Shown here: piece by piece, positions 12,544 to 62,770 of the stretch
Position numbering within the stretch: position 1 is the first letter of the stretch
How the letters are laid out: each line of letters opens with the position of its first letter
Sequence record: NC_048053.1
Reading direction: 5' to 3' (one strand)
DNA: 64,000 nt
The notes under the pieces: model-generated
Database searches by the model: none
What the model was told of the DNA's origin: nothing
Seen by the model: the letters and a program-made list of their open reading frames with translations, nothing else
Program-made: the position numbers and the translations under genes

Positions 12544-12861
12544 TTAGGCAAAGCCTTTCGGAATTTTCACTTTTGCGACCACTTCCACAGCCTGCAAAAG
12601 AGTTTTCGCCTTGAGCAAAAGTTTCAGTGTTGCCACATTCTTTTTGCCGCCAGCACTAGCGCCATATTTGGCAGTAGTTTCTTCGCTTTTTAAAACATCC
12701 AGAACGTGCGAAAGTTTCGAGGTATCAAGCTCTTTAGCTTTAACCAAAGTTTCGATACTGGATAGCAGAGACTCACCACGCGCACCAAAAAGAATTTTGG
12801 CATTCGAGGACTGACTCTTTGTTGCCGAAACTGAATCAACCTTTAAGGAAATCGTCGTCAT
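12544..12861 (-). CDS. Small basic protein with ISL...SVSA N-terminus, probable virion protein
   Basis: MTTISLKVDSVSATK; Lys/Ala-rich. Confidence 0.65.
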   Translation of the reverse strand: MTTISLKVDSVSATKSQSSNAKILFGARGESLLSSIETLVKAKELDTSKLSHVLDVLKSEETTAKYGASAGGKKNVATLKLLLKAKTLLQAVEVVAKVKIPKGFA

Positions 12862-12863
12862 AC

Positions 12864-13418
12864 TTATTTCCTCTTCTGTTGAGTCCAGTCACGTTTCTGG
12901 TTTTGATTCTGAACAGGTTTTACTTCTTCAACCGGAGAAGAATTTTCTTCCTCTTCTTCCTGTTCGGTTTCAATTTCCGGTTCAGGTTCCGCAGGTTTCT
13001 CTTCCGGTTTAACGTCAATCGGCGCTTCGATGTGAGAAGAAACCACAGGCGCAGGCGCATCAGCAATTTTAGCCATAGGCTTTGCTTGAACTTCCGGAAC
13101 AGAAAAATGTTCGTCCAGATGTGCGCGAGTAATCAGATTGCCCTTATCAGCCAGAATTTTTTCTTTCTCTTCTGCCGACATTTTCATGCAGGCGATTTCC
13201 AAAGTTTTCCCGCGCATATACGTTAAACCTTTCGGCAAACGATCACGACCAGTAAAGGGCAGACCGTTCGACGGAACAGCAGGTTCGAAACTATCATCGA
13301 ATTCCCACTGGCGTTTTGCCGCAATGCACTTTGGCCCCCACACACCATCACACACGCCGTCATACCAGCCGAGGAATGTCATGATGACTTGAATCTGTTG
13401 ATAGAAATCACTGAGCAT
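12864..13418 (-). CDS. Peptidoglycan-binding-domain-like protein with acidic/Pro-rich tail
   Basis: IQVIMTFLGWYDGVCDGVWGPKCIAAKRQWE fits the PG_binding_1 pattern (L..LGY..G..DG.+GP.T..A++.+Q). Confidence 0.65.
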   Translation of the reverse strand: MLSDFYQQIQVIMTFLGWYDGVCDGVWGPKCIAAKRQWEFDDSFEPAVPSNGLPFTGRDRLPKGLTYMRGKTLEIACMKMSAEEKEKILADKGNLITRAHLDEHFSVPEVQAKPMAKIADAPAPVVSSHIEAPIDVKPEEKPAEPEPEIETEQEEEEENSSPVEEVKPVQNQNQKRDWTQQKRK

Positions 13419-13430
13419 AAATTTCTCCTG

Positions 13431-13457
13431 AAAGAAAAGGAGGCCGAAGCCTCCCTA
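13431..13457 (-). terminator. Rho-independent terminator
   Basis: GGGAGGC-TTCG-GCCTCC-TTTTCTTT. Confidence 0.8.
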
Positions 13458-13461
13458 ACTT

Positions 13462-16400
13462 TTACGCGGATTTAGTTTTGTCTTTCGTCGCCTTGATTTT
13501 ATCAAGAGCAGCAACGCATTTCTTCAAGTTCGTAACAGAGTAACCTGCTTTGATGATCTTGTTGATTTTCGCTTTTGCTTTTGCGACGGACGGTAAGAAT
13601 CCGATCCACATACCATCAGCTTTCTCGAACGTACCAAACTTACGAGTGTTTGGAATTTTCTTGCCAGCAAATTTGGTAGCCATCGGGTTCGTTGCAACGT
13701 CGATCATGATGCGCAGACGATCTTCCATTACCATCGGATAAGCCTTAACGTGTTTCTTATCGGATGCAGCGCGGTGACGTACAAGGAAGAACTGACGAAG
13801 TTCTGATTGCAATTTCACTGCCTGTTTCTGATTGAAACTCATGCGGCCTGTCGAAGCGAATACGTCGAGAACATATTCCAAACGTTTTGCTGTCGCGTTG
13901 TCGAATTCGTATTTCTTCTCGATGTAGTCCAAGAACTTCTCGAAATCTGCGTAGTAATAGAAATCCACGTAGATGTAAGAACCGAATTCCACAAACTCTT
14001 GCTCTTTCAGCATTTTCGTATCCGGATCAGAAACGTCAGCATACAGAGCAATGAATCCGTTGTACACGGTAGGCGTTAAGTTGAAAGCCATATCGGTTTT
14101 CGATTCCTTAACTGCCTCGCGAACAGAAATCGTTGCAGGCTTAACTTTGTTATCCAGCGGTTTCAGCGGTTTCGGTGCAGGACGAACCTTGCCAGCCGCT
14201 TCTTTCACGCCTTCATTGATAGGCTTATCTTCGCGTTTATTTTCCGCACGTTTATTCTGACGAGCAGCTTCACGTTCGATTTTCGGCAGACGCTCACGCG
14301 TAGCTTCTTTATCTTGCGTTTCTTTCTCATCCTGAATCTGATCTTTCGCACGCTTGTTGTTAGACATGCGTTCAACGCGTTTACGATCAGTTTCTGTCGC
14401 CCACGGCTTGTTAGTTTTGAAAAACTCTTCAAGCTGTTTATCCGTTACTTTGGTTGCGACATGAATTTTCGCAGCGGAGATAGTCATCAACTCATCGGTG
14501 CCGTGGATACGAACACGCACGGTACTGATAGGATCGTCAGAACGTAAACGAGTTGTTCCCGGCTCATTACGAACAGAGATACCCACGATCTGACCGTTGC
14601 CGAATTCTGTTACGACTGGCATCAAATACAATGCGCGTTTCAGAATTTCACCGTCGATAAACTCATTCTCTTTCGTCCAATCACGCAGACGAGTTAAACC
14701 GTAGCCGTGACGATCTGGAATCTTCTGGTTGTTCACAATCGGACACTGTTCCATGATACCGAAACCACGGAGCGGTTCAGCCGGAGTAAGCGGAATCATC
14801 TGCGCAACCGTAGTCTTACGCATATCAGCAAACTCTTTTTGTTCGATTGAGTTCAACTCTGCTTTCGCAGCGAAGTAATCTTCGAAATCTTCCATTTCGT
14901 TGTTGGCGATCAGAAGTTCCGCGTTCATACGAATCGGACGCAAATCATATTTGTCCAAAGGCTCGTAAAGTTCGTTGCCTTTTTCGTCGAACTGCGTTTT
15001 CTGCAAAGTCTTCCACATTAAGCGAGCGACTTTACCTACTTCCAAAGTTTTGTTCGTCATGATCCAGTCGATGAACACAACTTCACGCGCCATATCACCC
15101 GGCTTGCCGTTTTCATCCAGAGTTGCAGCACTAACATCCGGACGGAAAATACGTGCAGTGGATTGATCGTAAACACCCGGCGACCACGGAGTATCGCAAC
15201 GAATGATACGGCTACCCATTTGCATGTTGTGGCCTTCGGAGATCGCCTGTTCGTTCGCAATCAGAATCTGAATTGTTGGATCAGTTTTGAATGCGTCGAG
15301 GTTTGCGCCTTTATCCTGACCAAGTTTGCTAACTTCACCGTGATAAAGCACAGCAATCTTTTTGTAGTTAGGAGGCAACGCGTTATAGATTGCGTTTGCG
15401 GAACGTGTGTAACGAGTAAACACGATCAGCTTACCAACTTTCTCTTCTTTCCAGTAATCCGGATCTTGCGGAGGTGGAACCATTGACGGAGGAAGATCCG
15501 CACGCCCATAACCATCGCTATGTTTACGCGCCAGATATTTTTTACCATCGTAAACTGCGATATCCAATTCACGCGGCTCTACGCCCGGTTTCCACTCAAA
15601 GATCTGGTGAGTACGGTTTGCAGGATCACGCTGCGCCTGAACTTCGAAGTGTTGTTTGATGCGATCAATAATCGTCGTTACTTTGACAGACACAAAGTTT
15701 TTCACTCCAGCCTGTTCAAAAGTTTCGCGAGCGATATCATCACCCATCGGATCGGTAAGCATCATTTCCATGCGCTGAAAATATACGTTCAACTCAACGT
15801 TGTTTGCCAGCAAGGAACCTAATACATCACCTTCCTCTTCGTTGTTATCTTCCGGATCGATATCCGGGTTCGAATCGTTTTCGTCAGCGCTACCGCCTTC
15901 GTCATCGTCCGAATTACCGCCTTTCTTCTTCGCGTTTTCCGCAGCTTCGTTCAACATATCGAAAAGTTGCTGATACATTGCATCGTAAACTTGCTTGTGC
16001 AAATCAGAATGCGGAACAGAAGCATCGTCGATGTTTACCGGGAAGAAAGTATCAATCGGCGACGGAAGCATGAAAGCCCAATGCTTACGTTTGTACGCAA
16101 TGAATGCCGTGTGGTTAGACAGACGAGAATGCGCACGACGAATCGCGGCAAGTTCGCCATCACCTTTATCCAGCGTATCGAGATCGCTACCGAAAATTGT
16201 CGGAGACATTAACGCAGCCTGACCAACAACGTCAGTCACGATATCAGTTACCAACGTACCAGTTGCGATACGTGCATAGCGAACAGAAGGAACAGTGAAT
16301 ACTGCTTTCGTATTCAAGTGAACCGCAGAACCGCCAGCCATGTTTTTCGCTTTATGACTTTCATCGAGCAGCACGTAACTAAAGTTGAAACGTTTTACGA

Positions 16401-19296
16401 ATTCAACTGCGCCACGAATACGAACACGCACACCGCCGATATCAACATCCAGCGTACCCGTTGACAGGAAAGAAAGACCAGCAACAAAGATTGTGTTTTT
16501 CGGTGCCTGCATGATTACGTCATAGAGACGTTCTTGCGTCCACACGCCGACTGTATCGGAAGTGATCGGCACTGCGTTCCAACCGTTTGCAATTTTATGC
16601 AGGTCATCACACCAGTTTGCAACGAGGTTTGTCGGACACAGAATCAACGGACGAATTTGTTCTTGTCCGAGATCCTCAAGCTCTTTCATCATACAACCGA
16701 TATCAGTAAGACCGATGATCGTTTTACCGCCGCCCGGTGCAATAAAGATCGTTGCAAAGCGAGGACGACGACGCAGAGTTTGATGTGCGCCCAACTGGTG
16801 AGGCATTAACGCTGTACCCTGTTTCAATCCGGGGAATTGAATATCTTCCGCAGTGATTGAAGTATCAGGTTTTAACTTTTCAACTTCTTCTTCCGCAGCG
16901 CTGAAAATTTCCAGAGCGTTTGGAGCGCAACGAGCATACAGAGTTGCGAACGGCAGCGTCACATGTTGCAGACGGTTACTGTTCGGCGCATCCGGAGATT
17001 CAGCCAGCAACGCATAAAGTTTCTTGCGATCATATTTCAGAATCGCGTCACATGCTTCACGGAAAATTGCGCCGCCGAGATAGTTAACCAGACGACCCAT
17101 ATCCGCAAGTTTCGCTTCGGTTCCGATTTTGAAATAATGCGGATCTTCTTCCATCGCTTCGGCAGCGGCGGCAATCGATCCAGTTTCATTAATCAGAGTT
17201 GCGAGCAAGTTACTTCCGCGCAGACCAGCAGCATCATTCAGAGTACGAATCATAATGCGGAACAACGCACGATCAACCAGAATGTTTTCGTTAACGGAAA
17301 GATCGTTTTCGACAATACCGTTATACAATCCGCGATCATAGTTGGAATCTGCGAGATTGGTTCCTTCGTCATAACCCAAAGAGGCAGCAGCATTTTTAAC
17401 GAGCGCAGACAGTTTCGGCATTTTACCGACGCGTGCCATGTAGCCGTAAGTTGCGCAGATATCCGCAACCAATTTCAAAAGCTGTTCGGTGCCGCTATTG
17501 CTTGCGCCGTTGATAGTGATCGAAGTTGAAGACGAACCGCTAATGATTTTCCCGGATGCAGCTTCGAGAGAACCAGTATCAGAGAACAGAATGTTCGCAG
17601 CGGTATGGCCTTCTGACGCAGACGTTGAAAGCAAACGAACAATTTCCGCAGCGCTACGGAAGTTCGGAGATTCACCCGGTTCAGCAAAATCAAAACCGAG
17701 AATATCAGCAGTATCGAGAGACGTTGGCGCTTTAGCACCGATGATACGTGAACTTGCAATACCAATACTCTGACTTGCAGAGCGAACGATAGTTGCGAAA
17801 TCCGGATCAACGCCTAAACAAATGCCGCGATATTTTGCCAGCGAGTTTGCGCGATCTTGCGTCGTGCGATCAATGTCCAGATCATTTTCTTTTACGGAGA
17901 AAATATCAGAACGTAACGTGTTGTGAGATTCACTGAACGGAATACCTTTTTCATACAGGTCTTCCAGTACGCTGTTAAATTCACTTTCGAATTTTGCAAC
18001 GGTATCCAGATCGATATCATCACGCTTAGGCAGAACAGCAGGCATACCATTCGGCATCATAGTCAGACCGTTTTCGTCCGACTGAGTATCAGTTACCTGA
18101 TAGCCACACTCTTTACGCACGTCCTGCAAACGAGGAATCGAAGTTGCAGAAGTAACGTAGCGAGGAATCTGCGAAATTTTCGTGTAGAGACGAATCGCAC
18201 CAGTTGTACCTTTTTTCTTTTTGGTACGCCCTGCCGTCATGTAGTAACTGGCCCAGCCAGAATACCAACGATAAAGGCAAAGAGTTTTCAGTGCGCTATC
18301 ACCTTGCGAAATGTAATCCACAAATTCTTTACGCAGAGAAAGAATCAAACCGGATTCAACTTCAACGCACAGCGCATGAGCAACCGGGTTAACTTCTACG
18401 TCACCCTGATCCGCACGCATGTTCTGCAACTGACGATAAGTGATCTGACGAGACGGCATAGCACGCAGACCAATCGACATAAAGTTAGAAGCAGCTTTCA
18501 CCAACTTCATATCAACGTCACGGAAAACTTCAACGCCAACTTGTGCCATCAACGGATGAATTGCATCAAAGATCGCATTCAGTTGTGACCATTTAAAATT
18601 CAGCGGAATTGTGTGAAGATCGGTATCGAACATCGCACGACCGACAGGACGTTTCTTTCCGAAAATTGCTTCATGCAATTGTTGTGCAGCGCGCAAAGCA
18701 CCCTGAGCAATTTCAGCAGAATAAATTCGCGTGTTGTTACTCTCAAATGCTTCGTCCTGTTTGCTGTCAATAAGAGCAAGCGGAGGACGGCGCATAAGCA
18801 CAAAATTCCCGCTTTGAGCGAGATCACTGTTACCGGACGGAATACCGGAGTTAACGATATCGCTACCGCCAGCAAAACGCTTCGACGGGCGAATTGTCAG
18901 ACCGGAAGGATACTGTAAGTTTTGCGCCAGTTTTTCCATTGTTGCGGAAGAAGGACTTGCAACAATAGATTCGATTGTTGAAATGCCATCAGCCAACATG
19001 CGGCGAACTTCCGCAACAAACTGATCCGGATCAACATCAATCATATCTTCAAAATCAGCGCCGCGAGCAACCAATACTTGAAGAACGTTGAAAGCCAATT
19101 GCGTGCGAGCACAATATTCCGACGCCAGCAAACCAAGTTGTGCGAAAACTTTTTTGTTTGCAGCGGAAACATATAGCTCTTTATATTTCTCTTCGTCGGA
19201 CGCCGACAATTCGTGAATGCTTAACGTCTTATTGACGGCATCAACGAGTTGCGTAGAGCCTGACGGTTGTGCAGCAGACGTGCTAAAAATTTGCAT
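13462..19296 (-). CDS. 1944-aa SNF2-family helicase/translocase-domain protein
   Basis: MPHQ, APGGGKT, ILCPTNLVANW, LLDESH, ATGT, KLIVFTRY, SEGHNMQ, DTPWSPGVYDQSTARIFRP; about 830 aa unknown N-terminus starting MQIFSTSAA. Confidence 0.85.
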   Translation of the reverse strand: MQIFSTSAAQPSGSTQLVDAVNKTLSIHELSASDEEKYKELYVSAANKKVFAQLGLLASEYCARTQLAFNVLQVLVARGADFEDMIDVDPDQFVAEVRRMLADGISTIESIVASPSSATMEKLAQNLQYPSGLTIRPSKRFAGGSDIVNSGIPSGNSDLAQSGNFVLMRRPPLALIDSKQDEAFESNNTRIYSAEIAQGALRAAQQLHEAIFGKKRPVGRAMFDTDLHTIPLNFKWSQLNAIFDAIHPLMAQVGVEVFRDVDMKLVKAASNFMSIGLRAMPSRQITYRQLQNMRADQGDVEVNPVAHALCVEVESGLILSLRKEFVDYISQGDSALKTLCLYRWYSGWASYYMTAGRTKKKKGTTGAIRLYTKISQIPRYVTSATSIPRLQDVRKECGYQVTDTQSDENGLTMMPNGMPAVLPKRDDIDLDTVAKFESEFNSVLEDLYEKGIPFSESHNTLRSDIFSVKENDLDIDRTTQDRANSLAKYRGICLGVDPDFATIVRSASQSIGIASSRIIGAKAPTSLDTADILGFDFAEPGESPNFRSAAEIVRLLSTSASEGHTAANILFSDTGSLEAASGKIISGSSSTSITINGASNSGTEQLLKLVADICATYGYMARVGKMPKLSALVKNAAASLGYDEGTNLADSNYDRGLYNGIVENDLSVNENILVDRALFRIMIRTLNDAAGLRGSNLLATLINETGSIAAAAEAMEEDPHYFKIGTEAKLADMGRLVNYLGGAIFREACDAILKYDRKKLYALLAESPDAPNSNRLQHVTLPFATLYARCAPNALEIFSAAEEEVEKLKPDTSITAEDIQFPGLKQGTALMPHQLGAHQTLRRRPRFATIFIAPGGGKTIIGLTDIGCMMKELEDLGQEQIRPLILCPTNLVANWCDDLHKIANGWNAVPITSDTVGVWTQERLYDVIMQAPKNTIFVAGLSFLSTGTLDVDIGGVRVRIRGAVEFVKRFNFSYVLLDESHKAKNMAGGSAVHLNTKAVFTVPSVRYARIATGTLVTDIVTDVVGQAALMSPTIFGSDLDTLDKGDGELAAIRRAHSRLSNHTAFIAYKRKHWAFMLPSPIDTFFPVNIDDASVPHSDLHKQVYDAMYQQLFDMLNEAAENAKKKGGNSDDDEGGSADENDSNPDIDPEDNNEEEGDVLGSLLANNVELNVYFQRMEMMLTDPMGDDIARETFEQAGVKNFVSVKVTTIIDRIKQHFEVQAQRDPANRTHQIFEWKPGVEPRELDIAVYDGKKYLARKHSDGYGRADLPPSMVPPPQDPDYWKEEKVGKLIVFTRYTRSANAIYNALPPNYKKIAVLYHGEVSKLGQDKGANLDAFKTDPTIQILIANEQAISEGHNMQMGSRIIRCDTPWSPGVYDQSTARIFRPDVSAATLDENGKPGDMAREVVFIDWIMTNKTLEVGKVARLMWKTLQKTQFDEKGNELYEPLDKYDLRPIRMNAELLIANNEMEDFEDYFAAKAELNSIEQKEFADMRKTTVAQMIPLTPAEPLRGFGIMEQCPIVNNQKIPDRHGYGLTRLRDWTKENEFIDGEILKRALYLMPVVTEFGNGQIVGISVRNEPGTTRLRSDDPISTVRVRIHGTDELMTISAAKIHVATKVTDKQLEEFFKTNKPWATETDRKRVERMSNNKRAKDQIQDEKETQDKEATRERLPKIEREAARQNKRAENKREDKPINEGVKEAAGKVRPAPKPLKPLDNKVKPATISVREAVKESKTDMAFNLTPTVYNGFIALYADVSDPDTKMLKEQEFVEFGSYIYVDFYYYADFEKFLDYIEKKYEFDNATAKRLEYVLDVFASTGRMSFNQKQAVKLQSELRQFFLVRHRAASDKKHVKAYPMVMEDRLRIMIDVATNPMATKFAGKKIPNTRKFGTFEKADGMWIGFLPSVAKAKAKINKIIKAGYSVTNLKKCVAALDKIKATKDKTKSA

Positions 19297-28923: not shown

Positions 28924-30885
28924 TTAAAGCAGGCGCTGCAACGCATTGATTGCGAAATCTACGTCAAACTCGTCGCCAATGAAAGTAGCAATCGGCATAT
29001 TGGTTTTTGGATCTTCTGAAACTACTGCGCGAACATCGTAGTCGCGAGCAAATTCATAAACACTATACCAGTCGCCATTCTCTTCAAATTCAATGTCGTT
29101 ACGTTTAGCATTGAAACGTCCGTTTGGAATTTGAATTACTTTACGTGCATCTTCTGGAGGTTCTGCTTTCTTTTTCAGATACTGAACGAACGAATCCGCA
29201 GAAGTAGTTTTATCAAAGCAAACGTAAACAGGAGTTCTACCGCCAGCCTCAATGGATGAAATCAGAAGCACAGGTTTCGGAGAATACTCATCCAGCCAAT
29301 CGAAAATATCTCCCAACATCGAGCGACGTTCACTATAACCGTCTGCGCCAAGTTCACTGAAAGTAAATTCAGCGATTGTTTTATCCGAAGGCTTAACTAA
29401 GAATTCCCAAATGGAATAGAACATTCGCGGAAGGAATTTCTTCGCCTTTTTAAGAGAAGCCAGAGTTGCGTATTTGCCATGCAGTTTCGAAACTGCATAA
29501 TACGTTTTAAAGTAGTAGACAGTGATTTCATCCTCACTATCAAAAGCATCACTACTTTCTTCTCCACAAACGCGAGCAAGGATCTTCCAGAAAGTTACTT
29601 CTGGATCATCTGAGAAATCAGCCAATCCTGTAGCGATGTTTAAAACCTTCGCTGCATTATTTGCCTTATCCAAAAGTCGATCCATCAGGAAATCTGTCTC
29701 GCCGGATTTCAAAAACTCTTCAACCGGGATCGCTTCGTTCGCTGTCTGGATTGATTTAAAATCCTGACGTGCTGCGAGCGTAGTCATTATATCATGTGCA
29801 AGAGTTTTTTGTTTTGCACTTTTGAATTTGGAAAAAGCATCGCGCAACAGAGATTCTTTTTTCGGATTCTCTTCGATAGCTTTAACCCAAAATTCATACG
29901 CTCTAGGAATGAGTTTCGAGATATTCTTATACGAGATAGCAGCAGGAATCTTTTTAAAGAATTCCATTGCGGATTCATCAGTTGTGTGCATACCTCCCGG
30001 ACGGGAATTGCGTGCCTTAGCCGCTTTCTCTTTTGCCGTATAGAGTTTATCGAGGGCATCATCCAATTTATCCAGACTAAGCGCAACGAGCTTTTCAATT
30101 CCAGTAAGCGTGAAATCGCCGCCACCGTCATTATACAAATCTTTCTTGCGCGAAAGGATTGCAGGGCCAGAAGATTTATCAGTAACAACGTTGATGTTTT
30201 GGTCTACCCATTCCTGAACCTTTTTCACAAACAAAGTATCTTTGGCATCAGGATAGGCAACTTCCGCAATATAACGGAACGATGATCCGTTGGAGTTCAC
30301 AAACTTTTTCAGCAATAAACGCATAATAGGTTTATTGACGTTTTTATCTTCCGGATTGACCATGTAGGCAATCAGAGTATTCGCTTTAACATCACGCTCA
30401 ACGAATTTCTTATTGCTTCCATCAACAAGATTCATACAGCTAGTCCAACCGCGATCAGTGCTCATGCCTGCAATGTCATACGGGTGCATTGACAGACAAA
30501 CAAGTTTATCGCCTTTCGCCGCCGTAACAATCTGACGACGATTCGCATCGTTATCAAAAAGTTTTTTCAGGTCGGGCTGTTTGGATAAAACTTTTCCGAG
30601 ACGTTGTACACGATCATGTCGATCTTTTACTGTACCCGCTGCATAGTCGAGAAGTTCGAAATTGTTTTCACGGAGGAACGCAGCAATAGAAGAAGGCACA
30701 TGCGAATCAGGAATTCGAATGTTACGCTCAACAGCATAATCGAAATAAATACGATAGGCTTTCTTGCCGCGCTTATGGGATTGCTGTTCGAATATTTCCA
30801 GCAATCTCTGATCAGGTTTCCAGCCGCGCATATAGTTTCGGTATTGCGAAGGCTGCAACGCACTAATACTGACTACTGTTTTCAT
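28924..30885 (-). CDS. Probable virion protein, paralog A (MKTVVSISAL...)
   Basis: Shares about 250 N-terminal aa with the neighbour, including SMHPYDIAGMSTDRGWTSCMNL. Confidence 0.75.
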   Translation of the reverse strand: MKTVVSISALQPSQYRNYMRGWKPDQRLLEIFEQQSHKRGKKAYRIYFDYAVERNIRIPDSHVPSSIAAFLRENNFELLDYAAGTVKDRHDRVQRLGKVLSKQPDLKKLFDNDANRRQIVTAAKGDKLVCLSMHPYDIAGMSTDRGWTSCMNLVDGSNKKFVERDVKANTLIAYMVNPEDKNVNKPIMRLLLKKFVNSNGSSFRYIAEVAYPDAKDTLFVKKVQEWVDQNINVVTDKSSGPAILSRKKDLYNDGGGDFTLTGIEKLVALSLDKLDDALDKLYTAKEKAAKARNSRPGGMHTTDESAMEFFKKIPAAISYKNISKLIPRAYEFWVKAIEENPKKESLLRDAFSKFKSAKQKTLAHDIMTTLAARQDFKSIQTANEAIPVEEFLKSGETDFLMDRLLDKANNAAKVLNIATGLADFSDDPEVTFWKILARVCGEESSDAFDSEDEITVYYFKTYYAVSKLHGKYATLASLKKAKKFLPRMFYSIWEFLVKPSDKTIAEFTFSELGADGYSERRSMLGDIFDWLDEYSPKPVLLISSIEAGGRTPVYVCFDKTTSADSFVQYLKKKAEPPEDARKVIQIPNGRFNAKRNDIEFEENGDWYSVYEFARDYDVRAVVSEDPKTNMPIATFIGDEFDVDFAINALQRLL

Positions 30886-32669
30886 TGTTCATCATCCATC
30901 ATAACTAATGCAGCATCGAGAATACTTTCTTCCACTCCGAATCTCAGATCTTTTTCAGACTGAACGGTAGTAGGATAGAAAATCATTTTGCCATGTCCAT
31001 CTTCCGTGTATCCAAAGTTAAATACCTCAGCGCCTTCTTTGAGAAGGGAAGGGAATCGCGGATCATCAGCAACACGACTGCCTGCATTAAATTCATTGTC
31101 TACGCCAAAGTAATCCGCAAGTTTCTTACGAGACGCTTCGGACATTTTGCGCATTATTACAGTGATAACATACGAGCCAATACTAACCTCGTAGTTTGCA
31201 TCGGGCGCTTTAGAATAAAACAGCGCTCTCAGTTGATACTCACTGCGACGGAAACTTACAGCATGATCGATAACGTATGCCATAGGCATAACATCTTCAA
31301 ACTCTTTCATTGCTTCCATGAAAGATTGATCTGTCTTCGCACTGTATCCTTCACCTGCCATATCAGCAATAGCTTCTAAAGCAACTTCGGAATCACGAAC
31401 GAAGTTTTTACGAATAAACAGATCAACAAACATTTTCACAATGCGGTAGCGTTGAGAAAGTTTCTCGCGTGCAAACGGTGCCCATACGCCCAATGAACGA
31501 GACAGGCGGCGAACCATGCTGCCGAAAGATCCATTCATCCCAAATAATTTCGCGCCCGTTTCAGATTGCTGCAAAATAACTTGCTGCAACACGATGGAAG
31601 CAAATACTTCACGCTCACTGCGTATAGCAAATGCTGAAATGCGTGCCATCATCATTTCAAAGTCACGTTCGCTTAAAACAGATTTAAATGCTTCGATGAT
31701 CGTAGCAAGCACTTCTGAATTAAGTTCGTGCGGGCTTTCCAGACGTTCCTGCGTGAATATCATTCCAAACAGTTCGTCTTTGAAACGGCGAGCCAGAACA
31801 GACCACTGCATATCGCTAACAACAGACAGTGGATGCGTTGCGAGAATATTTTTAACCTCTGCCGGATTACTTTCAGCGTAAGTCAACTGAGGGAAAATAC
31901 TTTCGCGAGTATCAGAATAAAGATCTTCATGAATGCGGTAACGGTATTCCAATGATTCACCGCCGAGAAGTTCCTTATTGATTTTTTGATCAACGAAAGT
32001 TTGAACGCTTTCGATGAACGGCATGTTAGGTGCAGGATATACACGCTCAACATGGTAGATGAATTTATCTTTGGATTGTTCTGAATAGAAACGCTTAATC
32101 AGAACGCGACTCAACGGACGTTTAATATCACGGTCAGTTGTATCAACCAGATACGCAATCAGCGTATGCTGTTTAATATCATCACGCACAAATTGTTTGT
32201 TGATGCCGTCATCCAAATTCATGCAGCTTGTCCAGCCGCGCCCGGTACTCATTCCCGCAACATCATATGGGTGCATACTCAAGCAGATAGATTTCTTCCC
32301 GCGAGTAACTTCAACCAGAGCTTTGCGCGACGGATCGGTTTCGAAAATTTTCTTGAGTTCCGGATCTTTTAAAACTTTACCCAAACGCAAAATGCGATTG
32401 TGTTTATCTTTCACGGTGCCTGAGAGATAGTCCTCAAGCACAAAACCCTTCTCAACCAAATAATCTTTGATTTCAGAAGGGCATTCAGGCGCGAAAGTTT
32501 TAATCAATTTGTCAGACTGAAAATCGAAGTACAGTCGCATAGCTTTTCTGCCAGTACGACCGCTGATTTTCTGAAAGAGTTGCAGCATTTTAGGATCAGG
32601 CCGCCACATCTGCATGAACGGTCGATACTGCGAAGGAGTCAATGCACTTAAACTGACTTCGATTTCCAT
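30882..32669 (-). CDS. Probable virion protein, paralog B (MEIEVSLSAL...)
   Basis: SMHPYDVAGMSTGRGWTSCMNL; C-terminal half unlike paralog A. Confidence 0.75.
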   Translation of the reverse strand: MEIEVSLSALTPSQYRPFMQMWRPDPKMLQLFQKISGRTGRKAMRLYFDFQSDKLIKTFAPECPSEIKDYLVEKGFVLEDYLSGTVKDKHNRILRLGKVLKDPELKKIFETDPSRKALVEVTRGKKSICLSMHPYDVAGMSTGRGWTSCMNLDDGINKQFVRDDIKQHTLIAYLVDTTDRDIKRPLSRVLIKRFYSEQSKDKFIYHVERVYPAPNMPFIESVQTFVDQKINKELLGGESLEYRYRIHEDLYSDTRESIFPQLTYAESNPAEVKNILATHPLSVVSDMQWSVLARRFKDELFGMIFTQERLESPHELNSEVLATIIEAFKSVLSERDFEMMMARISAFAIRSEREVFASIVLQQVILQQSETGAKLFGMNGSFGSMVRRLSRSLGVWAPFAREKLSQRYRIVKMFVDLFIRKNFVRDSEVALEAIADMAGEGYSAKTDQSFMEAMKEFEDVMPMAYVIDHAVSFRRSEYQLRALFYSKAPDANYEVSIGSYVITVIMRKMSEASRKKLADYFGVDNEFNAGSRVADDPRFPSLLKEGAEVFNFGYTEDGHGKMIFYPTTVQSEKDLRFGVEESILDAALVMMDDEQ

Positions 32670-32679
32670 GATTAACCTC

Positions 32680-33051
32680 TTACGCTTTCACTTCCAGTTC
32701 GTGATCGCCGCTGTTCCAAATAAGTTCGCGAATATTGCGCGGCATAATAATACAGCCGCTCGATGCAGTGCCGGGATTCTTGACACTATCGCCGTGAATC
32801 TGGAAAGCACTACGACCGAACATTTGATTTTCTTTTGCCGGAGAAAGATCCATCGCATACGGGCCAGTTTTCTGACTTGTGCGCGGAGCGTTAATTGTGT
32901 AACGACCGATAGGAAGTGGCCCTTCACCAACAACAGCAGTATCCGCAACAACATTTTTATGTTTGCCTTTACCGCTGTAGCCAGTTGCAACACGTTTGCC
33001 GTTTTTATCCAGCATTTCACCGGACGTAATATGATAAGTCCACATCAGCAT
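32680..33051 (-). CDS. Tlde1/DUF2778-like L,D-transpeptidase-fold protein
   Basis: GYSG, GPLPIGRY, GRSAFQIHGD, ASSGCII (H...S.GC catalytic pattern). Confidence 0.85.
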   Translation of the reverse strand: MLMWTYHITSGEMLDKNGKRVATGYSGKGKHKNVVADTAVVGEGPLPIGRYTINAPRTSQKTGPYAMDLSPAKENQMFGRSAFQIHGDSVKNPGTASSGCIIMPRNIRELIWNSGDHELEVKA

Positions 33052-33614
33052 TTACCTCTATAGCGTAGATAGTTTTGCAGACAACAAAAGACGATTTCTT
33101 TCATCTTGCCTTCCATCTGCGCATTTTGACGAGCAGGATCATGCAAACAAACCTCAATGGTTTCGCTCGCCCAATCAACGGACACCCAACGCGAATTAAA
33201 CATCCAACTGAATCGCGCTTCCCAATCGCGAAGAATGTCATCCAAATCTGGAGTACGATCAACGCCTAAATCAGAAAGAGGATAAATCAGAGAATAAAGC
33301 GGAGGGGGAGAGGATAGACTGGTGCCTGCGCCGTCGAATTTATCGAAAGCCTTTTGCACATGCCAGAGAGTTTCTTCGGTGGATAGTGGCTCAACTTTTC
33401 GCAGTACATATTTATTTGCAGCCAAACCAGCTTGAGCAAGTGTAGCACGGCAAACAACATTGTCGCCGTCTTCATTCATGTATGCAAAAAGATATTGCGT
33501 GTTGCTGATCTTTCGAGAAGCAACAACACGCACATCCAACTTCCCACGATTCAAAACTTCTTGCAAGGCACGGTTGCTTAATGCAGCCGAGATAGAAACT
33601 AAAATCTCCATCAT
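33045..33614 (-). CDS. Hypothetical protein (MMEILVSISAA...)
   Basis: ORF in operon; carries the shared N-terminal motif. Confidence 0.75.
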   Translation of the reverse strand: MMEILVSISAALSNRALQEVLNRGKLDVRVVASRKISNTQYLFAYMNEDGDNVVCRATLAQAGLAANKYVLRKVEPLSTEETLWHVQKAFDKFDGAGTSLSSPPPLYSLIYPLSDLGVDRTPDLDDILRDWEARFSWMFNSRWVSVDWASETIEVCLHDPARQNAQMEGKMKEIVFCCLQNYLRYRGKC

Positions 33615-33629: not shown

Positions 33630-34691
33630 TTATTTGCCCGCGTTAGGAGAAATACCTTTCGCAGCTTTCAGGTAATTGCCAGTAGAAAGTTTCGAACCCT
33701 TCACGGCTTCGACAGCTTTAACTGCTTTCGCAAGTTTAGCCGCCAGAGCTTTCAGAGTACCGCGAATAGTTCTGCGACCAGCACCAGTGGCGCTATGCGT
33801 CAGTTTATATTCTCCGCCATCGCGTTTGATCGTCGCTTTGAATCCTTTAGATTCAAACTGGATTTTATCGCCCGACGCTTTCAGCGTAGAATTTTTACCA
33901 GTGACGTTTTTGGCAATCGCATTAATTGCTTTCATATGAGATTCCGGAACAGATTTAGAAATCTTCACATTTTTATTTGCAGTAGCAGATTTTTTCGCAC
34001 GGTCTGCGCTCTCTTGAGCACGACCGCGTTTAGACAGTTCTTCTTCAACTTCTTCCAGACTGCCTTTCATGATCCCTTTATCCAGCTTGTTTTTCAGCGT
34101 CTGTTTAGCTGGAGTGTGAGCACCTTTGATTGCTGCGCGTGCTTGCTGGATCGTACCGCCAGTGGAATTTTTAGCTTTGGTTTTGGTCTTGCTTGCAAGC
34201 TGATCGAAAACAGATTGGCTAGGAGCACGTACCAGAGTAACGGGCTTCGCAACGCCTTTAACTTTCAGAGTCGAACCGACAGAAATTTTTGCAAATTTCT
34301 TCGCATCAAAAAGATCCGGAGCGCTGAAACCAAACGTAGCTTTGATGCCGAAAACTTTACGCAGAGCTTTGGATGCAGCAGACATTGCCTGAGTAGCAGC
34401 AGTTTTACAGCGGCGTACTTCTGGCTGCATTGTAGCAATGCGAGTTTTGCGTGCATCGGAAGGTTTCGCTTTCTGAGCTTCACGCAGTTTTTCGAGATTG
34501 GCTTTGGTTTTGTGGTACTTGCTCGCTTCTTTATACGCTGTTTTAGCCAGCTTAAAAGCAGCAGCAATATCAGGGCGCACTTTGGGCAAAAACATAATCT
34601 TTGCGTTAGCGCCTTTGCCGATAACTTGCCATAACGGGGCGGCGGCAGAAGTAGACTGAATTTCAGCAGACAGGTCGAGAGTCACTTTCAT
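33630..34691 (-). CDS. Lys/Ala-rich probable internal virion protein
   Basis: MKVTLDLSAEIQSTSAAA; strongly basic. Confidence 0.7.
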   Translation of the reverse strand: MKVTLDLSAEIQSTSAAAPLWQVIGKGANAKIMFLPKVRPDIAAAFKLAKTAYKEASKYHKTKANLEKLREAQKAKPSDARKTRIATMQPEVRRCKTAATQAMSAASKALRKVFGIKATFGFSAPDLFDAKKFAKISVGSTLKVKGVAKPVTLVRAPSQSVFDQLASKTKTKAKNSTGGTIQQARAAIKGAHTPAKQTLKNKLDKGIMKGSLEEVEEELSKRGRAQESADRAKKSATANKNVKISKSVPESHMKAINAIAKNVTGKNSTLKASGDKIQFESKGFKATIKRDGGEYKLTHSATGAGRRTIRGTLKALAAKLAKAVKAVEAVKGSKLSTGNYLKAAKGISPNAGK

Positions 34692-35763: not shown

Positions 35764-35772
35764 AAAATTAGC
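35764..35772 (-). promoter_or_regulatory. TAATTTT motif, candidate late promoter
   Basis: GCTAATTTT, 29 nt upstream of ATG 35734. Confidence 0.45.
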
Positions 35773-39691: not shown

Positions 39692-39925
39692 TTACGGAAG
39701 TTCCGTGAAGAATTGATCTTTGTCGTAATAACCATCGAAGAGAAATGGCCCCGTCACTGCTTCAAGTCGGAGTTTTTCTTTCAGAAGTTTCATATAGCGC
39801 TCACCGTAAGCGCCCAAATCGGCAGGCCACTTACGCGCTGTTTCATCAACATAGCAAAGGAAAGTATATTCCCAACTTTGTTGCGCTAAATTCGGCGCAT
39901 TGGAAAGAGAAACAAAAATTTGCAT
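39692..39925 (-). CDS. Small protein with MQIFVSLS leader
   Basis: 77 aa; shared N-terminal motif; TAATG overlap. Confidence 0.7.
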   Translation of the reverse strand: MQIFVSLSNAPNLAQQSWEYTFLCYVDETARKWPADLGAYGERYMKLLKEKLRLEAVTGPFLFDGYYDKDQFFTELP

Positions 39926-40361: not shown

Positions 40362-41039
40362 TTACTCCAGAATATTTTCGGTGCGCGGTTTAAACGTTCC
40401 TTTGTTTCCGATTGCCGATTTGATTTGCGTAGGACTGAACACAACATAGAAAAAATGTTCGCCACGTTTCGCAATGATTCCATCCCTTCCGGTTGCGGCT
40501 GCAAACACTTCCGGAAAGCGCCACGATTCCGGCTCACCTGCGTAGATATCCTGAAACAGATTGTTGCCAGCAGTGATAACATCCATGCCAACAAAGTTAT
40601 CCAGATATTCTTTCTTCGCACTTGCCAGACCTTGATATTCAATATCATAGTTTTGTGCGAGAAACTCATTAAAATGAGGGCGCGTTAAACCGTTAGCAAT
40701 TTTAGTTGCTTGCGTAAGAGTCATACGCGGAGGCTTTTCAAAAATGATAGGCTTAGTGATTTTCAAATAGACGGGCATAGTGCTGCCACTATCTTTTGTG
40801 TAGTAGCGAGCGAATTCGGCAGAATCAGTGAAATAAAATCCAATACCGTATTCGTCGTTACCTCCACCCAAACGTTTTTTATCAAACGAATCAAAACTTC
40901 CCGGAGTTCCGTGGTAAACAACGAGAGGATTGCCTTGCGGATCTTTGACAACTGATTTTCCAAACCACTTGTCGAAGGCTGCTTGATCTTTTGAAGTGAA
41001 AGCCGAAATAGGCTTCGACAAACTTATTAGAAGTTCCAT
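40362..41039 (-). CDS. ADP-ribosyltransferase-fold protein (ART-PolyVal-like) with MELLISLSK leader
   Basis: FDKWFGKSVVKD..G.PLVVYHGT, GIGFYFT...A..Y, MPVYL....P, G.DGII, YVVFSPTQIKSA..N.G.F. Confidence 0.75.
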   Translation of the reverse strand: MELLISLSKPISAFTSKDQAAFDKWFGKSVVKDPQGNPLVVYHGTPGSFDSFDKKRLGGGNDEYGIGFYFTDSAEFARYYTKDSGSTMPVYLKITKPIIFEKPPRMTLTQATKIANGLTRPHFNEFLAQNYDIEYQGLASAKKEYLDNFVGMDVITAGNNLFQDIYAGEPESWRFPEVFAAATGRDGIIAKRGEHFFYVVFSPTQIKSAIGNKGTFKPRTENILE

Positions 41040-41158: not shown

Positions 41159-41638
41159 TTACTGACCGTAGATCCTACGGCTTGGATACGACTTCATGCG
41201 CTCAACGCCGGGCGTAACAGCCAGCGTTTCATAATAATCTTCCAACGCATCGACGTTAGGAAAGAACACCAGTTGATCTTTCATTTTGCTCCAAACAAGA
41301 TACGAAAGTTTCCGGTTATCTCCTTCAATCGCCAGATAGAAATCACCTGCGCCAAAAGGCGTCTTAACAGGCATAGGCTTCATGAAGTTTACGAAATCAC
41401 TCGCTTGTTTAAGCACACGATCATTGTAGATACAGATTACCCCATCTTCACCAGACGGAACAAAATGCAACTCACCAGTGCGCGATTTCAGCATTCCAAT
41501 TGGAGATTTTGACGTGTCAACATCTGCACCGAAAATCTTCTTACACATATGCTTGATTTCAAGCGGATTCAGGTGCTCAGAATAACGCGTCCACAATAAG
41601 TCTTCCGAGACTTTTGAAAGGGAAAAGACGATTTGCAT
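41159..41638 (-). CDS. Hypothetical protein with MQIVFSLSK leader
   Basis: 159 aa; first gene of the leader-bearing cassette. Confidence 0.75.
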   Translation of the reverse strand: MQIVFSLSKVSEDLLWTRYSEHLNPLEIKHMCKKIFGADVDTSKSPIGMLKSRTGELHFVPSGEDGVICIYNDRVLKQASDFVNFMKPMPVKTPFGAGDFYLAIEGDNRKLSYLVWSKMKDQLVFFPNVDALEDYYETLAVTPGVERMKSYPSRRIYGQ

Positions 41639-41667: not shown

Positions 41668-41676
41668 AAAATTAGC
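41668..41676 (-). promoter_or_regulatory. TAATTTT motif, candidate late promoter
   Basis: GCTAATTTT, 29 nt upstream of ATG 41638. Confidence 0.45.
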
Positions 41677-49969: not shown

Positions 49970-50521
49970 TCATTTTCTGTTTTTCATGTTTAGGCGTTTC
50001 TGCAATTTCTTGCCGATCTGCGTCATAATGGCTGCTACGGCGTCTCCATCGTTCTTTCCGACCGCTTCTGCCAATTTGTCGCCCTGTTCTCGACTCAGTT
50101 CCGGCATAATCATTTTCAACATTTTACTGCGAGCATTTGCGCTTTTTGATCTTGAAACGCTAACACCGCCATTCAAATTGAATTTGCGATCAACACTTTG
50201 CTGTGTGATAGCTTGAAGATCCCGCGCAAGTCCCGCGAACAATCTCTGAATAGGAGAAATTTCGCTGCCTTCCGGAATCTTATAGAGCGAACGCAGTTCC
50301 TGATCTTCTTTTTCACACGCAACTGCACGCACGCTTGTTTCGCGCACATCAACGGCGTCTGCCTGTTTAACATGCGGAGTTTCGCGCAATACAATTGTTG
50401 AAGATCCTTCATTCGAATCATCTGCAATTGGTGCCTCGTTAGTTGTTTCTTTACGAGCTTCCCAACCGAGCGGAATATCTTGTGAAGGATCTGCGCTTCC
50501 GAAAATGATTTCAGTTTGCAT
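49970..50521 (-). CDS. Hypothetical protein (MQTEIIFGSAD...)
   Basis: GAGG RBS; adjacent to the neck-like gene. Confidence 0.75.
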   Translation of the reverse strand: MQTEIIFGSADPSQDIPLGWEARKETTNEAPIADDSNEGSSTIVLRETPHVKQADAVDVRETSVRAVACEKEDQELRSLYKIPEGSEISPIQRLFAGLARDLQAITQQSVDRKFNLNGGVSVSRSKSANARSKMLKMIMPELSREQGDKLAEAVGKNDGDAVAAIMTQIGKKLQKRLNMKNRK

Positions 50522-59029: not shown

Positions 59030-59431
59030 ATGCACGTACTTATTTCGTTGAGTGCTAACACTCAAGACAAAGGGCGCACTGCTCTGGACTCTCCTGAATC
59101 CACCACAACCCACGCGGATCTTTCTGAATATTCTTCTCTGGAAAAACGTTTACGCCAGCACGAAGAAGAAAAACAGAAAACCAAAGTTGCAGAAAAAGCC
59201 GCACCTAAGAAAACTGTAAAAAGTAAGAAAGGTGACGGCGAAGAATCTAAAGAAGATGATTCTGAGGGCTTCGGCGATGATACAAATGATTTTGGATCTG
59301 ACGATGGAGACGAAAGCGATGATTCAGGTGGAGGCAAAGGAAAGTCGAAAGATTCAGAAGATGAGGAATCCGGAGATTCGGATGACGAGTCTGGAGATTC
59401 TGACGAAGACTTTGCAGACGACGAAGAGTGA
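59030..59431 (+). CDS. Acidic protein with MHVLISLSA leader
   Basis: GAGG RBS; Asp/Glu/Ser/Gly-rich C-terminus. Confidence 0.8.
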   Translation: MHVLISLSANTQDKGRTALDSPESTTTHADLSEYSSLEKRLRQHEEEKQKTKVAEKAAPKKTVKSKKGDGEESKEDDSEGFGDDTNDFGSDDGDESDDSGGGKGKSKDSEDEESGDSDDESGDSDEDFADDEE

Positions 59432-60547: not shown

Positions 60548-60549
60548 AA

Positions 60550-61318: not shown

Positions 61319-61319
61319 A

Positions 61320-61538
61320 ATGGCATGTGCAACGTGCGGGAATCGGCGACGCAGATTGACGATGGGTAAAACAGTCGCATTGCCCGATCCGACTCCTATT
61401 TCAAATACAATGAGCGCTGCCCGACTTACCCCTCATGGTTGGGTTCGCACTTGTACCAAATGCGGAAAAGTTTCTGAACCTTCCGCTTTCGCTGACACTG
61501 TTGTTCAACCGTGTGAATGCGAAAATAATCCGGAATAA
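61320..61538 (+). CDS. Small Cys-rich Zn-ribbon protein
   Basis: MACATCG...CTKCG...PCEC. Confidence 0.7.
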   Translation: MACATCGNRRRRLTMGKTVALPDPTPISNTMSAARLTPHGWVRTCTKCGKVSEPSAFADTVVQPCECENNPE

Positions 61539-61540
61539 AT

Positions 61541-62059
61541 ATGGACACTAATAAACTACACTCACTCGGCATGTATGACTTTGTGGAAAAGTACGCAAGT
61601 AAGCACGGTCGATGGTGGAACTTTGATGAGCGTTCCTCAATTGTGGTGCCATTTGAATTGATGGATGATCAAAAAGTTATCCATTATAAGTGGATGCAAA
61701 ATGTTCCTGAAATTTTCATTAAGCCTGTTGTGGATGTTATTTTTACTTCATTACCAGAACAGAATGCTGAAAATTTTGGAAAAGAAGCCTCTGCTCTTTT
61801 CGAATGGCTCCGCCTCAATATCAAAGATCATGGTTTTCATTTCCGCTCGTTTGTCTTCAATAAAAATGACAAACGTGTTGGCGTTGTTTATCGTATCTTT
61901 GCTAATGAGGATTTTCCTTGTTACATCCATCCCGAATACATCACGCACGCAGAAGGCCGCGCACCGTGTCCGGCTTGTTATACTGCGGTGACTTTCGGAG
62001 AATTTCATCCTCTGGAAATCAAACCTGTTGATTCCCGTCTTATGGAGAAAACAAAGTGA
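61541..62059 (+). CDS. Hypothetical protein
   Basis: 172 aa; CPAC near the C-terminus. Confidence 0.75.
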   Translation: MDTNKLHSLGMYDFVEKYASKHGRWWNFDERSSIVVPFELMDDQKVIHYKWMQNVPEIFIKPVVDVIFTSLPEQNAENFGKEASALFEWLRLNIKDHGFHFRSFVFNKNDKRVGVVYRIFANEDFPCYIHPEYITHAEGRAPCPACYTAVTFGEFHPLEIKPVDSRLMEKTK

Positions 62060-62505
62060 CTCCCGGCTACTGGAAAGTTGTTCCTAACGAACGTTCCACA
62101 ACAATCATTCAGGCAATTTGCAGTGCAATTGTTTCTCCGGAAGATCTGGATGACCTGCACGTAACTCTGGCCTACGATAAAAACAATCCGGATAACGATA
62201 TTCCGTTAAGCAACGCTGATTTCAAAGCAACGATTTCTGGTGTTGAACTGTTTGGCGCGAACAGTGATATTCTGGTTCTTACTTTGGACTCGGAAGATCT
62301 GCAACGCGAACACGCACGCATTCACGAAAATCCTAACGTGAATTTCGATTTCATTCCGTATCGACCGCATATTACTATTGCGAAAAATGCTACGGAAGCA
62401 GAACTTGAATGCCTGCACAATATCATTATGTCTCCGAACATTCCTGTGCTATCGATTGTTCTCGGTGACGAATCGCGAGAAGATATTGATGAAAGTAGAG
62501 ATTGA
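62056..62505 (+). CDS. acb1: 2H phosphoesterase, Acb1 (T4 gp57B)-like
   Basis: Two HxT motifs (LHVTLAY, YRPHITIA); ILVLTLDSEDLQREH...FDF..Y.PHIT matches the Acb1 pattern as I recall it. Confidence 0.8.
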   Translation: MTPGYWKVVPNERSTTIIQAICSAIVSPEDLDDLHVTLAYDKNNPDNDIPLSNADFKATISGVELFGANSDILVLTLDSEDLQREHARIHENPNVNFDFIPYRPHITIAKNATEAELECLHNIIMSPNIPVLSIVLGDESREDIDESRD

Positions 62506-62770
62506 TCTCGACAAAGAAGACCAGTTAACTCCAAATGCGCAGCGTGCCGAAGATCGTGCGAAAGTACGCCGTCGCATCAAAGAGTATGGTGACACTCCTG
62601 ATGATGAAATAGATCAGAAGGAGAAAGAGAAGGAAGATCAGGCGGAAGAAAAACGCAAAACTGATAATCCTCCGCCTCCTGAAAATCTCGGTAAATTCAA
62701 ACCGGAAACTTACGAAAGTCTGGATCAACAACTTTCCCATATGGACAGACAAACTTCAAAAAATCTGTAA
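62489..62770 (+). CDS. Charged small protein (MKVEIDLD...)
   Basis: ATG 62489; leader resembles MIVEIDLS. Confidence 0.65.
   Translation: MKVEIDLDKEDQLTPNAQRAEDRAKVRRRIKEYGDTPDDEIDQKEKEKEDQAEEKRKTDNPPPPENLGKFKPETYESLDQQLSHMDRQTSKNL

Follow-up and report, generated by a model that had tools for sequence, protein, structure and literature searches.

A Ser-x-Ser-ending N-terminal leader on mostly unrelated proteins of Dickeya phage vB_DsoM_JA29 is a probable capsid-targeting propeptide

In bacteriophage T4, unrelated head-internal proteins (the internal proteins, Alt and gp24) carry a short N-terminal propeptide of 10–20 residues, the capsid-targeting sequence (CTS), which ends at a Glu-type protease motif that is also cut in the scaffold and the capsid protein and is removed by gp21 on maturation, T4-type prohead proteases cutting C-terminal to Glu (PMC5694885). 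The jumbo phages phiKZ, 201phi2-1 and SPN3US likewise contain many head-internal or ejected proteins, whose propeptides are cut at one short motif, (S/A/G)-x-E, by gp175/gp245, and in phiKZ-type phages diverged paralogues are noted to have kept conserved N-termini (PMC5694885). Here we describe an N-terminal leader ending in Ser-x-Ser (S-x-S) that is shared by proteins encoded in a 64,000-nucleotide stretch of DNA (hereafter the window). The window is 100% identical to positions 124001–188000, same strand, of the record of Dickeya phage vB_DsoM_JA29 (NC_048053.1; hereafter JA29), a jumbo phage of the genus Salmondvirus with the host genus Dickeya and a genome of 253,323 bp, which is assigned to the 'hairy' jumbo myoviruses. 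The observation is real, and its interpretation appears well supported by comparison with related phages: the shared N-terminus is probably a short capsid-targeting propeptide, similar in kind to the T4 CTS and made for a different protease.

The leader would be composed of two elements, an alternating-hydrophobic start, M-x-[IVL]-x-[IVLF], and a Ser-x-Ser tripeptide that is the predicted recognition site of the prohead protease of this lineage, gp134. In most bearers the two elements would abut to form an 8-residue leader, and in gp164, gp182 and gp183 a spacer of 4–6 residues would separate them, the leader length in JA29 ranging from 8 to 17 residues. All 13 N-termini quoted in the preliminary description of the window were found in place, each at an annotated coding-sequence start. 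When a core pattern (M.[IVLT].[IVFL][SD][LIT][SD]) was run over the complete genome (253,323 bp) in all six frames, 13 matches were obtained, 11 of which are annotated gene starts, and all 11 of these lie inside the window. A broader [SA] variant of the pattern was scored on a crude JA29 gene set from which several bearers were absent; it gave 6 N-terminal matches against 0.13 predicted from the internal rate, and the shuffled controls by which the preliminary description had wished the motif to be judged (residues 2–40, 2000 shuffles) gave a mean of 0.19 and a maximum of 3. A chance origin of the shared leader is excluded.

The codons at the two conserved Ser positions differ by gene (AGT, AGC, TCT, TCC, TCG and TCA, that is, both AGY and TCN), and the regions upstream of the leader genes differ from each other, indicating that selection acts on the peptide; a nucleic-acid signal was rejected because the codons vary and include both Ser codon families. 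The bearers had been described as unrelated proteins, which holds for most of them, since no BLAST similarity is left after the first 20 residues are trimmed, but not for the related pairs gp178/gp179 and gp164/gp230. With only these two pairs remaining after the trim, pure paralogy was rejected as the source of the leader, and about 14 BLAST-unrelated families bear it. The clear bearers number 12 in the window and three elsewhere in the JA29 genome, namely gp074 (MKTVVALAA), gp124 (MLFFVSVSA) and gp230 (MSTISLS..IASLSA).

A natural leader swap was found in the family of gp178 and gp179, paralogues with 46% identity over 236 residues. Neither has a Pfam match at E <= 0.01, and their 250-residue N-terminal domain is found in many jumbo phages. 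Among 120 homologues, this conserved domain, which starts AL.PS.YR..KGW, begins at the same residue in 112, and directly before it stands a leader that ends in S-x-S (5–12 residues) in 58 of the 120 and in hydrophobic-x-E (8–18 residues) in 53. The N-termini read MELMVSLS/ALPPSMYR in Alexandra gp189 (here and below, a slash marks the predicted cut), MRIQLAVA/AVPLSIAR in Lu11 gp213, MKTFKQFLNTLME/ALPLSTAR in RsoM2USA ORF132 and MQYTDLIE/ALKPSEYR in Atu_ph07 gp394, and in a 636-kb uncultured phage MKAIVKLHE/ precedes the homologous domain. Both of the hydrophobic-x-E phages examined, Atu_ph07 and RsoM2USA, carry a gene for a homologue of T4 gp21 (in Atu_ph07, 33% identity and E = 8e-15), and by sequence the hydrophobic-x-E leaders match the known T4-type cut after Glu. 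Because two leader types precede the same boundary, one cargo domain appears to be fitted with the leader of the resident protease, and the junction would be the predicted cut; the address label proposed earlier finds support in a single domain boundary that is kept behind either leader. In the AlphaFold model of gp178, the mean predicted local distance difference test (pLDDT) score is 88.9 and falls below 50 only at residues 1–8 and 444–452, suggesting that the leader is unstructured in free gp178. A Foldseek search of the PDB with this model returned nothing significant. The family also has an invariant S-x-H-P-Y-D..G-x-S-T-x-R-x-W-x-S-C block.

Like the protease motif of T4, the leader tripeptide is also present in the scaffold-like, capsid and portal proteins, where it may serve as a cut site. 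The 662-residue gp132 looks like a scaffolding protein, considering its long Asp/Glu-rich middle and the position of its gene between the capsid and protease genes; the annotation 'ATPase', which its Lu11 homologue gp067 shares, would be corrected accordingly in JA29. gp132 contains 27 S-x-S tripeptides against a mean of 11.3 in composition-preserving shuffles (0 of 5000 reach 27). In Lu11 gp067, A-x-A is enriched instead (31 against a mean of 16.2; 0 of 5000 shuffles reach 31), with 2 copies of S-x-S against a mean of 3.4 (4372 of 5000 reach 2). When a hydrophobic residue was required in front, the genome-wide rate predicted 0.68 sites for gp067 and 0.58 for gp132, and 10 (P ~3e-9) and 4 (P = 0.003), respectively, were seen.

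Local inspection of the head proteins gave further Ser/Ala pairs between JA29 and Lu11: IQEVSES/H, at residue 66, against QQVATA/SS in the capsid protein, FRSTS/S against ILATA/A in the portal, SKS/F against ALG/F at the protease N-terminus, HCPSCS/A against KCPACA/S in the scaffold-like protein, and GVSVS/RSKS..MLKMIMP in JA29 gp203 against IALA/RNRS..MLRMIMP in Lu11 gp132. Among 120 capsid-protein homologues, the enterobacterial clade keeps S-x-S at the site and distant members have A-x-A of the type SAL-A/SS, and 39 of 60 protease homologues have S-x-S-F near the N-terminus. The predicted cut after S66 would take 17.8% off the JA29 capsid protein; in PaBG, the small-x-small sites at 71 and 78 of the capsid protein would give a loss of 18.8–20.6%, which matches the loss of ~20% reported on its maturation (PMC7412058). 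A protease site after S-x-S, as put forward in the preliminary description, is therefore supported by the enrichment in gp132, by the capsid site about 18% into the protein and by the portal and protease N-termini, all of which have the A-x-A form in Lu11.

The predicted prohead protease gp134 is encoded outside the window next to the scaffold-like and capsid genes and matches PHROG 18299, 'head maturation protease'. No Pfam match was found for it at E <= 0.01, and a search of the PDB with its sequence gave spurious zinc-finger matches only. A family model was built on the homologue P0241 (87% identical to gp134) with a 60-sequence alignment (pLDDT 85.8, predicted template modelling score 0.80). 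Foldseek found nothing significant for this model in the PDB and 68 matches at E <= 1e-3 in BFVD, of which proteins of PaBG, RSL1 and phage G came first, followed by models of prohead serine proteases/COG3740 (E 1e-7 to 1e-4) with template modelling (TM) scores of 0.35–0.5. gp134 is predicted from this fold similarity to be a prohead protease with an HK97-like fold. The invariant positions across 60 homologues include H141, S198 and acidic residues, which are putative catalytic residues, and a Cys-Cys-Cys-His cluster (C208, C211, C223 and H225 in the numbering of the modelled homologue) that resembles a zinc ribbon set into the fold of the protease. The HK97-type prohead serine proteases (COG3740), called S78 in MEROPS, thus resemble the gp134 family as structural neighbours and in the position of the gene beside scaffold-like and capsid genes; gp134 differs from them in its missing Pfam match, TM-scores of only 0.35–0.5 and the inserted cluster. 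We know of no shared cargo leader described for the HK97-type group.

Homologues of two leader proteins, gp178 and gp166, occur in purified virions of RsoM2USA, Atu_ph07 and PaBG, as expected of the head cargo that the preliminary description had taken the bearers to be. Among the about ten major virion bands of RsoM2USA identified by LC-MS/MS is ORF132, the 76.6-kDa gp178 homologue (PMC8504454), whose locus tag was confirmed. The gp178 homologue of Atu_ph07, gp394, was detected in virions (18 unique peptides, 41% coverage; PMC6102473 supplement). In PaBG, the 221-kDa virion band, band 1 of the proteome, is gp202 (PMC7412058 Table 1), which is the gp166 homologue (94% coverage; locus tag checked). 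In two jumbo phages other than JA29, the gp178-family protein is abundant in the virion.

The leader is kept in related phages while the proteins behind it diverge. In the Erwinia phage Alexandra, syntenic proteins start MEIFVSLS/K (gp212, orthologue of gp193), MKILISLS/V (gp211, of gp191), MELTVDLS/K (gp210, of gp190), MEIFVSLA/KG (gp199, of gp181), MNQMISTS/AT (orthologue of gp166), MELMVSLSAL and LQVFVSLSAP. Two-part forms are also seen in Alexandra, for example MALIKISLGDSVLSESA, and the layout of gp182 recurs there in MALIKISLGDSVLSES/A, MALIKINLAGAVESVS/A and MCLIKLNLDEAVKSTS/A. The Alexandra orthologue of gp164, gp176, reads ..VVSIS/AATKA, and its JA29 paralogue gp230 reads ..IASLS/ASVAQ; for gp166, the N-termini are MGSLFTLNSLS/AA in PaBG gp202 and ..TPLAAA/V in Lu11 gp100. 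At least 13 clustered genes of the Pseudomonas phage Lu11 start MKIQLAVA, MKIQLATA, MKIMLAVA, MRIQLAVA or similar, and the Lu11-like Pseudomonas phage HRDY3 has MEMMLALA, MELQLALA and MELMLALA. The architecture of the leader is kept in both phages, but Ser-x-Ser is replaced by Ala-x-Ala.

The cargo itself turns over while the leader stays, gp192, gp182 and gp183 remaining without a BLAST match to the leader proteins of Alexandra and vice versa, and cargo orthologues that keep the peptide pattern across phages are only 26–55% identical. In Lu11, the leader MNVHIAVAA stands on gp203, which contains a eukaryotic-type topoisomerase IB core (PF01028, E = 1.7e-12), and the HRDY3 counterpart starts MMEMSIAAA; because its N-terminus is the leader of the lineage, this topoisomerase IB is predicted to be packaged in the head. 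The leader also occurs on a Lu11 protein with a weak ART-PolyVal match and on an HRDY3 protein annotated as a GNAT acetyltransferase. The Ralstonia phage RSL1 encodes a protease of the same family as gp134. Several of its small proteins (ORF109, 111, 120, 123, 124, 127 and 133) share a different, longer N-terminus (MTYNISAATKRLQGSLEV, MAYDITAAVSRLAGTKCAV, MISISAALLRLASTEVQAG, MYEIKAAVDRLKATEVVAG), which may be that lineage's own leader.

These comparisons suggest a pathway in which, late in infection, the leader would bring a protein into the scaffold core being assembled in the prohead. The activated protease would then cut after the second Ser, likewise in the scaffold, the capsid protein, the portal and its own N-terminus, and the mature cargo would stay alongside the DNA inside the head, from where it could be ejected into the next cell. 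We infer the docking partner, the sufficiency of the leader for packaging and the ejection. The cargo would include an ADP-ribosyltransferase of the ART-PolyVal family (gp192; PF18760, E = 2.3e-27, residues 33–216), a 215-kDa SNF2 protein (gp166; SNF2-rel_dom and Helicase_C in Pfam), the gp178/gp179 family and several very basic small proteins. The effector payload of the preliminary description is thus recognizable in gp192 and in the 1944-residue gp166; gp182, gp183 and gp191 are very basic (K+R 21–28%), and the label 'histone-like' rests on composition.

A wider reading, to which we give an even chance, is that a capsid-targeting system extends over a whole clade (Salmondvirus, Alexandravirus, Yoloswagvirus, Lu11, PaBG and many uncultured relatives). 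It would be served by an HK97-fold protease with a zinc-ribbon-like insert and small-x-small specificity. A Ser/Ala switch between sister lineages would be followed by every substrate, namely scaffold, capsid and portal, the protease and over 15 cargo leaders, and the 8-residue leader alone would be sufficient. The packaged, possibly ejected, proteome, comprising ADP-ribosyltransferases, SNF2 proteins, topoisomerase IB (Lu11) and GNAT (HRDY3), could then be read from sequence. Should the leader act as proposed, the packaged and maybe injected proteins of a poorly studied jumbo-phage clade could be listed from sequence alone, and the list would include candidate anti-defence and host-takeover enzymes, almost all of which are annotated 'hypothetical'. 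The leader would also represent a second, sequence-unrelated solution to the problem solved by the T4 CTS, in which the protease cleaves behind small residues instead of Glu. The Ser/Ala switch together with the gp178 leader swap would be a natural experiment on the co-evolution of a protease and its substrate set, and an 8-residue tag could load foreign proteins into large capsids.

Compared with the T4 CTS, the JA29 leader is likewise a short propeptide at the extreme N-terminus of several unrelated proteins, its cargo likewise includes an ADP-ribosyltransferase, and gp178-family members in phages with a gp21 homologue bear exactly such CTS-like leaders. As far as the features open to computation go, the leader would belong to the functional class of T4-type capsid-targeting sequences. 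It differs in that there is no sequence similarity, that the residue before the predicted cut (P1) is Ser (Ala in Lu11) and not Glu, that it has 8 residues against 10–20, that gp134 is not a detectable homologue of gp21, and that the JA29 system is known from sequence only. Membership by homology in the T4 CTS/gp21 system would entail an (L/I)-x-E cut and a gp21-family protease, whereas the JA29 leaders end in S-x-S; as judged from these features, the leader is analogous to the T4 CTS and not homologous. The phiKZ-type proteases differ in cutting after Glu, most of their propeptides exceeding 100 residues, whereas the JA29 leaders have 8–17 residues and a small-x-small site. In the polyvalent proteins of phages and conjugative elements (Iyer et al. 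2017, cited in PMC7824862), domains are fused in one giant protein. JA29 shares with them a repertoire of ART-PolyVal, SNF2 helicase and KMPT-N (gp133) and the idea of delivery with the DNA, but its domains are mostly encoded by separate genes, each with its own leader. The preliminary description knew of no account of such a leader, and none was found in the open literature, a mention in subscription papers on Y3 and RSL1 not being excluded; the leader peptides were not found in the text of the searched literature, nor was a description of a targeting sequence for this clade.

Two promoter-like motifs bear on the expression of the leader genes. CTAATTTT has only 6 copies in the 253-kb genome, fewer than the ~15 in mononucleotide shuffles, each of which lies 27–37 nucleotides upstream of a start codon; the genes so preceded are gp100 and the tail sheath gene gp126 (both outside the window), gp171, gp184, gp193 and gp211. 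It is a candidate late-promoter element, and its sharing hints weakly at co-expression of the leader operons with structural (tail) genes. CTGTAAAT, which the Lu11 annotation gives as a middle/late promoter motif, has 11 copies in the window against 2.2 expected and precedes the genes for DNA polymerase I, clamp loader, primase and sigma factor, among others.

Several points weigh against a capsid-targeting role. For JA29 and its closest relatives, cleavage and packaging are deduced from comparison, and the AlphaFold model of gp178 gives no evidence of a beta strand in the leader. The leader genes sit among replication and recombination genes, and gp193–gp190 are also downstream of a CTGTAAAT promoter driving the clamp loader, so that late timing of the leader genes is not established. 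A strict column test for S.S in JA29 against A.A in Lu11 succeeded in 2 of 124 cases in global alignments of 52 reciprocal-best-hit pairs, a failure attributed to the poor alignment of propeptide regions in global alignments; reliance was then placed on composition-controlled enrichment and local boundaries. S-x-S is frequent in Ser-rich segments. gp221, listed earlier as a weaker variant of the leader, has the strand-like start (MKVEIDLD) but no S-x-S tripeptide, and its membership is doubtful. Moreover, the assignment of gp134 as the protease rests on annotation and fold, with neither a Pfam match nor a PDB neighbour, and the window encodes a second peptidase, gp197. The latter was rejected as the processing enzyme, since it has no obvious HExxH motif and no ground to prefer it was found.

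It is unlikely, though the most credible of the alternatives, that the tripeptide is a prohead-protease site and the leader no address label, the proteins entering the head via other surfaces and the cut activating or releasing them in a zymogen-like manner. The site evidence bears on cleavage rather than on targeting, toxic cargo such as gp192 would gain from a masking pro-peptide, and long propeptides such as that of gp203 show that an N-terminal position is not obligatory. However, an 8-residue peptide is too short for masking an enzyme and is not part of the fold in the gp178 model, and the alternating hydrophobic start is conserved besides the tripeptide, even across a spacer. A separate docking surface on each of about 14 unrelated folds is itself unlikely, and such a peptide suffices in T4, as PMC5694885 states in citing Mullaney and Black 1996.

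A signal unrelated to the capsid, such as one for export or secretion, one recognized by a chaperone or a Clp-type unfoldase, or a degron setting the lifetime of the proteins, is considerably less probable. The leader genes are placed among non-structural genes, and the A-x-A of Lu11 resembles the motif of signal peptidase I. Small residues are preferred at P3/P1 or P1 both under the A-x-A rule of signal peptidase I and at the site of herpesvirus assemblin, (V/L/I)-x-A/S, and assemblin belongs to the same fold class as the prohead proteases of phages; with the JA29 leaders this is a resemblance only, and no relationship is demonstrated. The 8-residue leaders have no hydrophobic core (h-region) and no positive n-region, and a Sec-type signal peptide, whose h-region needs about 10 or more residues, was rejected on this anatomy. 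Such a signal also leaves unexplained that the tripeptide is enriched in the scaffold, the capsid, the portal and the protease and shows the same Ser/Ala switch there, that some homologues carry T4-type leaders, and that homologues are present in virions. The least probable explanation, to which we give hardly any weight, is a likeness of historical or nucleic-acid origin, in the form of a spread 5' gene segment or of a translation-initiation element that happens to encode the peptide. The bearers are clustered and include two paralogous pairs; against this, the codons vary freely between AGY and TCN at both Ser positions, the upstream regions differ between bearers, further bearers lie far off in the genome (gp074, gp124 and gp230), and the pattern is kept across phages at 26–55% cargo identity and shifts as a whole to A-x-A in Lu11 and HRDY3.

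Table. Coordinates of leader-bearing genes, promoter-like motifs and other genes discussed; positions are those of the window unless marked otherwise, and a slash marks the predicted cut
Feature	Position	Strand	Residues	N-terminus	Remark
gp164	12544..12861	-	105	MTTISLKVDSVS/A	two-part leader: strand-like start, then S-V-S
gp166	13462..19296	-	1944	MQIFSTS/AA	215 kDa, SNF2-family helicase-like
gp178	28924..30885	-	653	MKTVVSIS/ALQPSQYR	
gp179	30882..32669	-	595	MEIEVSLS/ALTPSQYR	gp178 paralogue
gp181	33045..33611	-	188	MEILVSIS/AA	additional ATG one codon upstream, 33614
gp182	33630..34691	-	353	MKVTLDLSAEIQSTS/AA	two-part leader; very basic, K+R 21%
gp183	34695..35162	-	155	MIVEIDLSVEQQSTS/AS	two-part leader; very basic, K+R 23%
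gp190	39692..39925	-	77	MQIFVSLS/NA	
gp191	39925..40359	-	144	MQVLISLS/K	very basic, K+R 28%
gp192	40362..41039	-	225	MELLISLS/K	ADP-ribosyltransferase, ART-PolyVal family
gp193	41159..41638	-	159	MQIVFSLS/K	
gp213	59030..59431	+	133	MHVLISLS/AN	acidic, D+E 32%
gp221	62489..62770	+	93	MKVEIDLDKE	strand-like start only; doubtful member
gp203	49970..50521	-	183		probable long propeptide ending ..NGGVSVS/RSKSANARSKMLKMIMP
gp170	20953-21717	-			Lys-rich, low-complexity
gp175	26308-26973	-			Lys-rich, low-complexity
gp180	32680-33045	-			Tlde1/YkuD-like L,D-transpeptidase domain
CTAATTTT	35764..35771	-			30 nucleotides upstream of gp184, head of the tightly packed run gp184-gp178
CTAATTTT	41668..41675	-			30 nucleotides upstream of leader gene gp193
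CTAATTTT	22612-22619	-			
CTAATTTT	57590-57597	+			
CTGTAAAT	9102, 12485, 28906, 42974, 47871, 49546, 57616	-			
CTGTAAAT	236, 53002, 57698, 62765	+			
gp132	99337-101325 (JA29 record)	-	662		scaffold-like; annotated 'ATPase'
gp133	101409-102512 (JA29 record)				beside the protease gene
gp134	102512-103330 (JA29 record)	-			predicted prohead protease
gp139	106684-108654 (JA29 record)	-		MTEFKSISAS	NAD-dependent DNA ligase
Lu11 gp203	L009:13481-15166	+		MNVHIAVAA	topoisomerase IB core
HRDY3 counterpart of Lu11 gp203	L016:8316-10004			MMEMSIAAA	
RSL1 region	L018, record 55000-104999				encodes a same-family protease as gp134

gp203, which was absent from the earlier list, has a probable long propeptide. 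Its conserved C-terminal part starts at residue 123, directly after ..GVSVS/RS, and its Lu11 orthologue gp132 starts MKELQIASNMIALA/RNRSGKNKRSAMLRMIMP, with the conserved part directly after a 14-residue leader ending IALA/RN. The own start of gp203, MQTEIIFGSA, is leader-like. The N-terminus of the DNA ligase gp139 resembles the leader, probably by chance, and was rejected; the Lu11 ligase has no counterpart to it.

Some neighbouring genes were also noted. In gp133, encoded beside the protease, a KMPT-N domain is accompanied by a weak match to an SpvD-like cysteine protease. gp180, inside the leader operon, has no leader, and the endolysin gp184 is likewise an operon member without one. gp175 and gp170 also lack a leader; going by gene order, gp175 may be the counterpart of PaBG gp191, which is a virion protein and appears in several gel bands.

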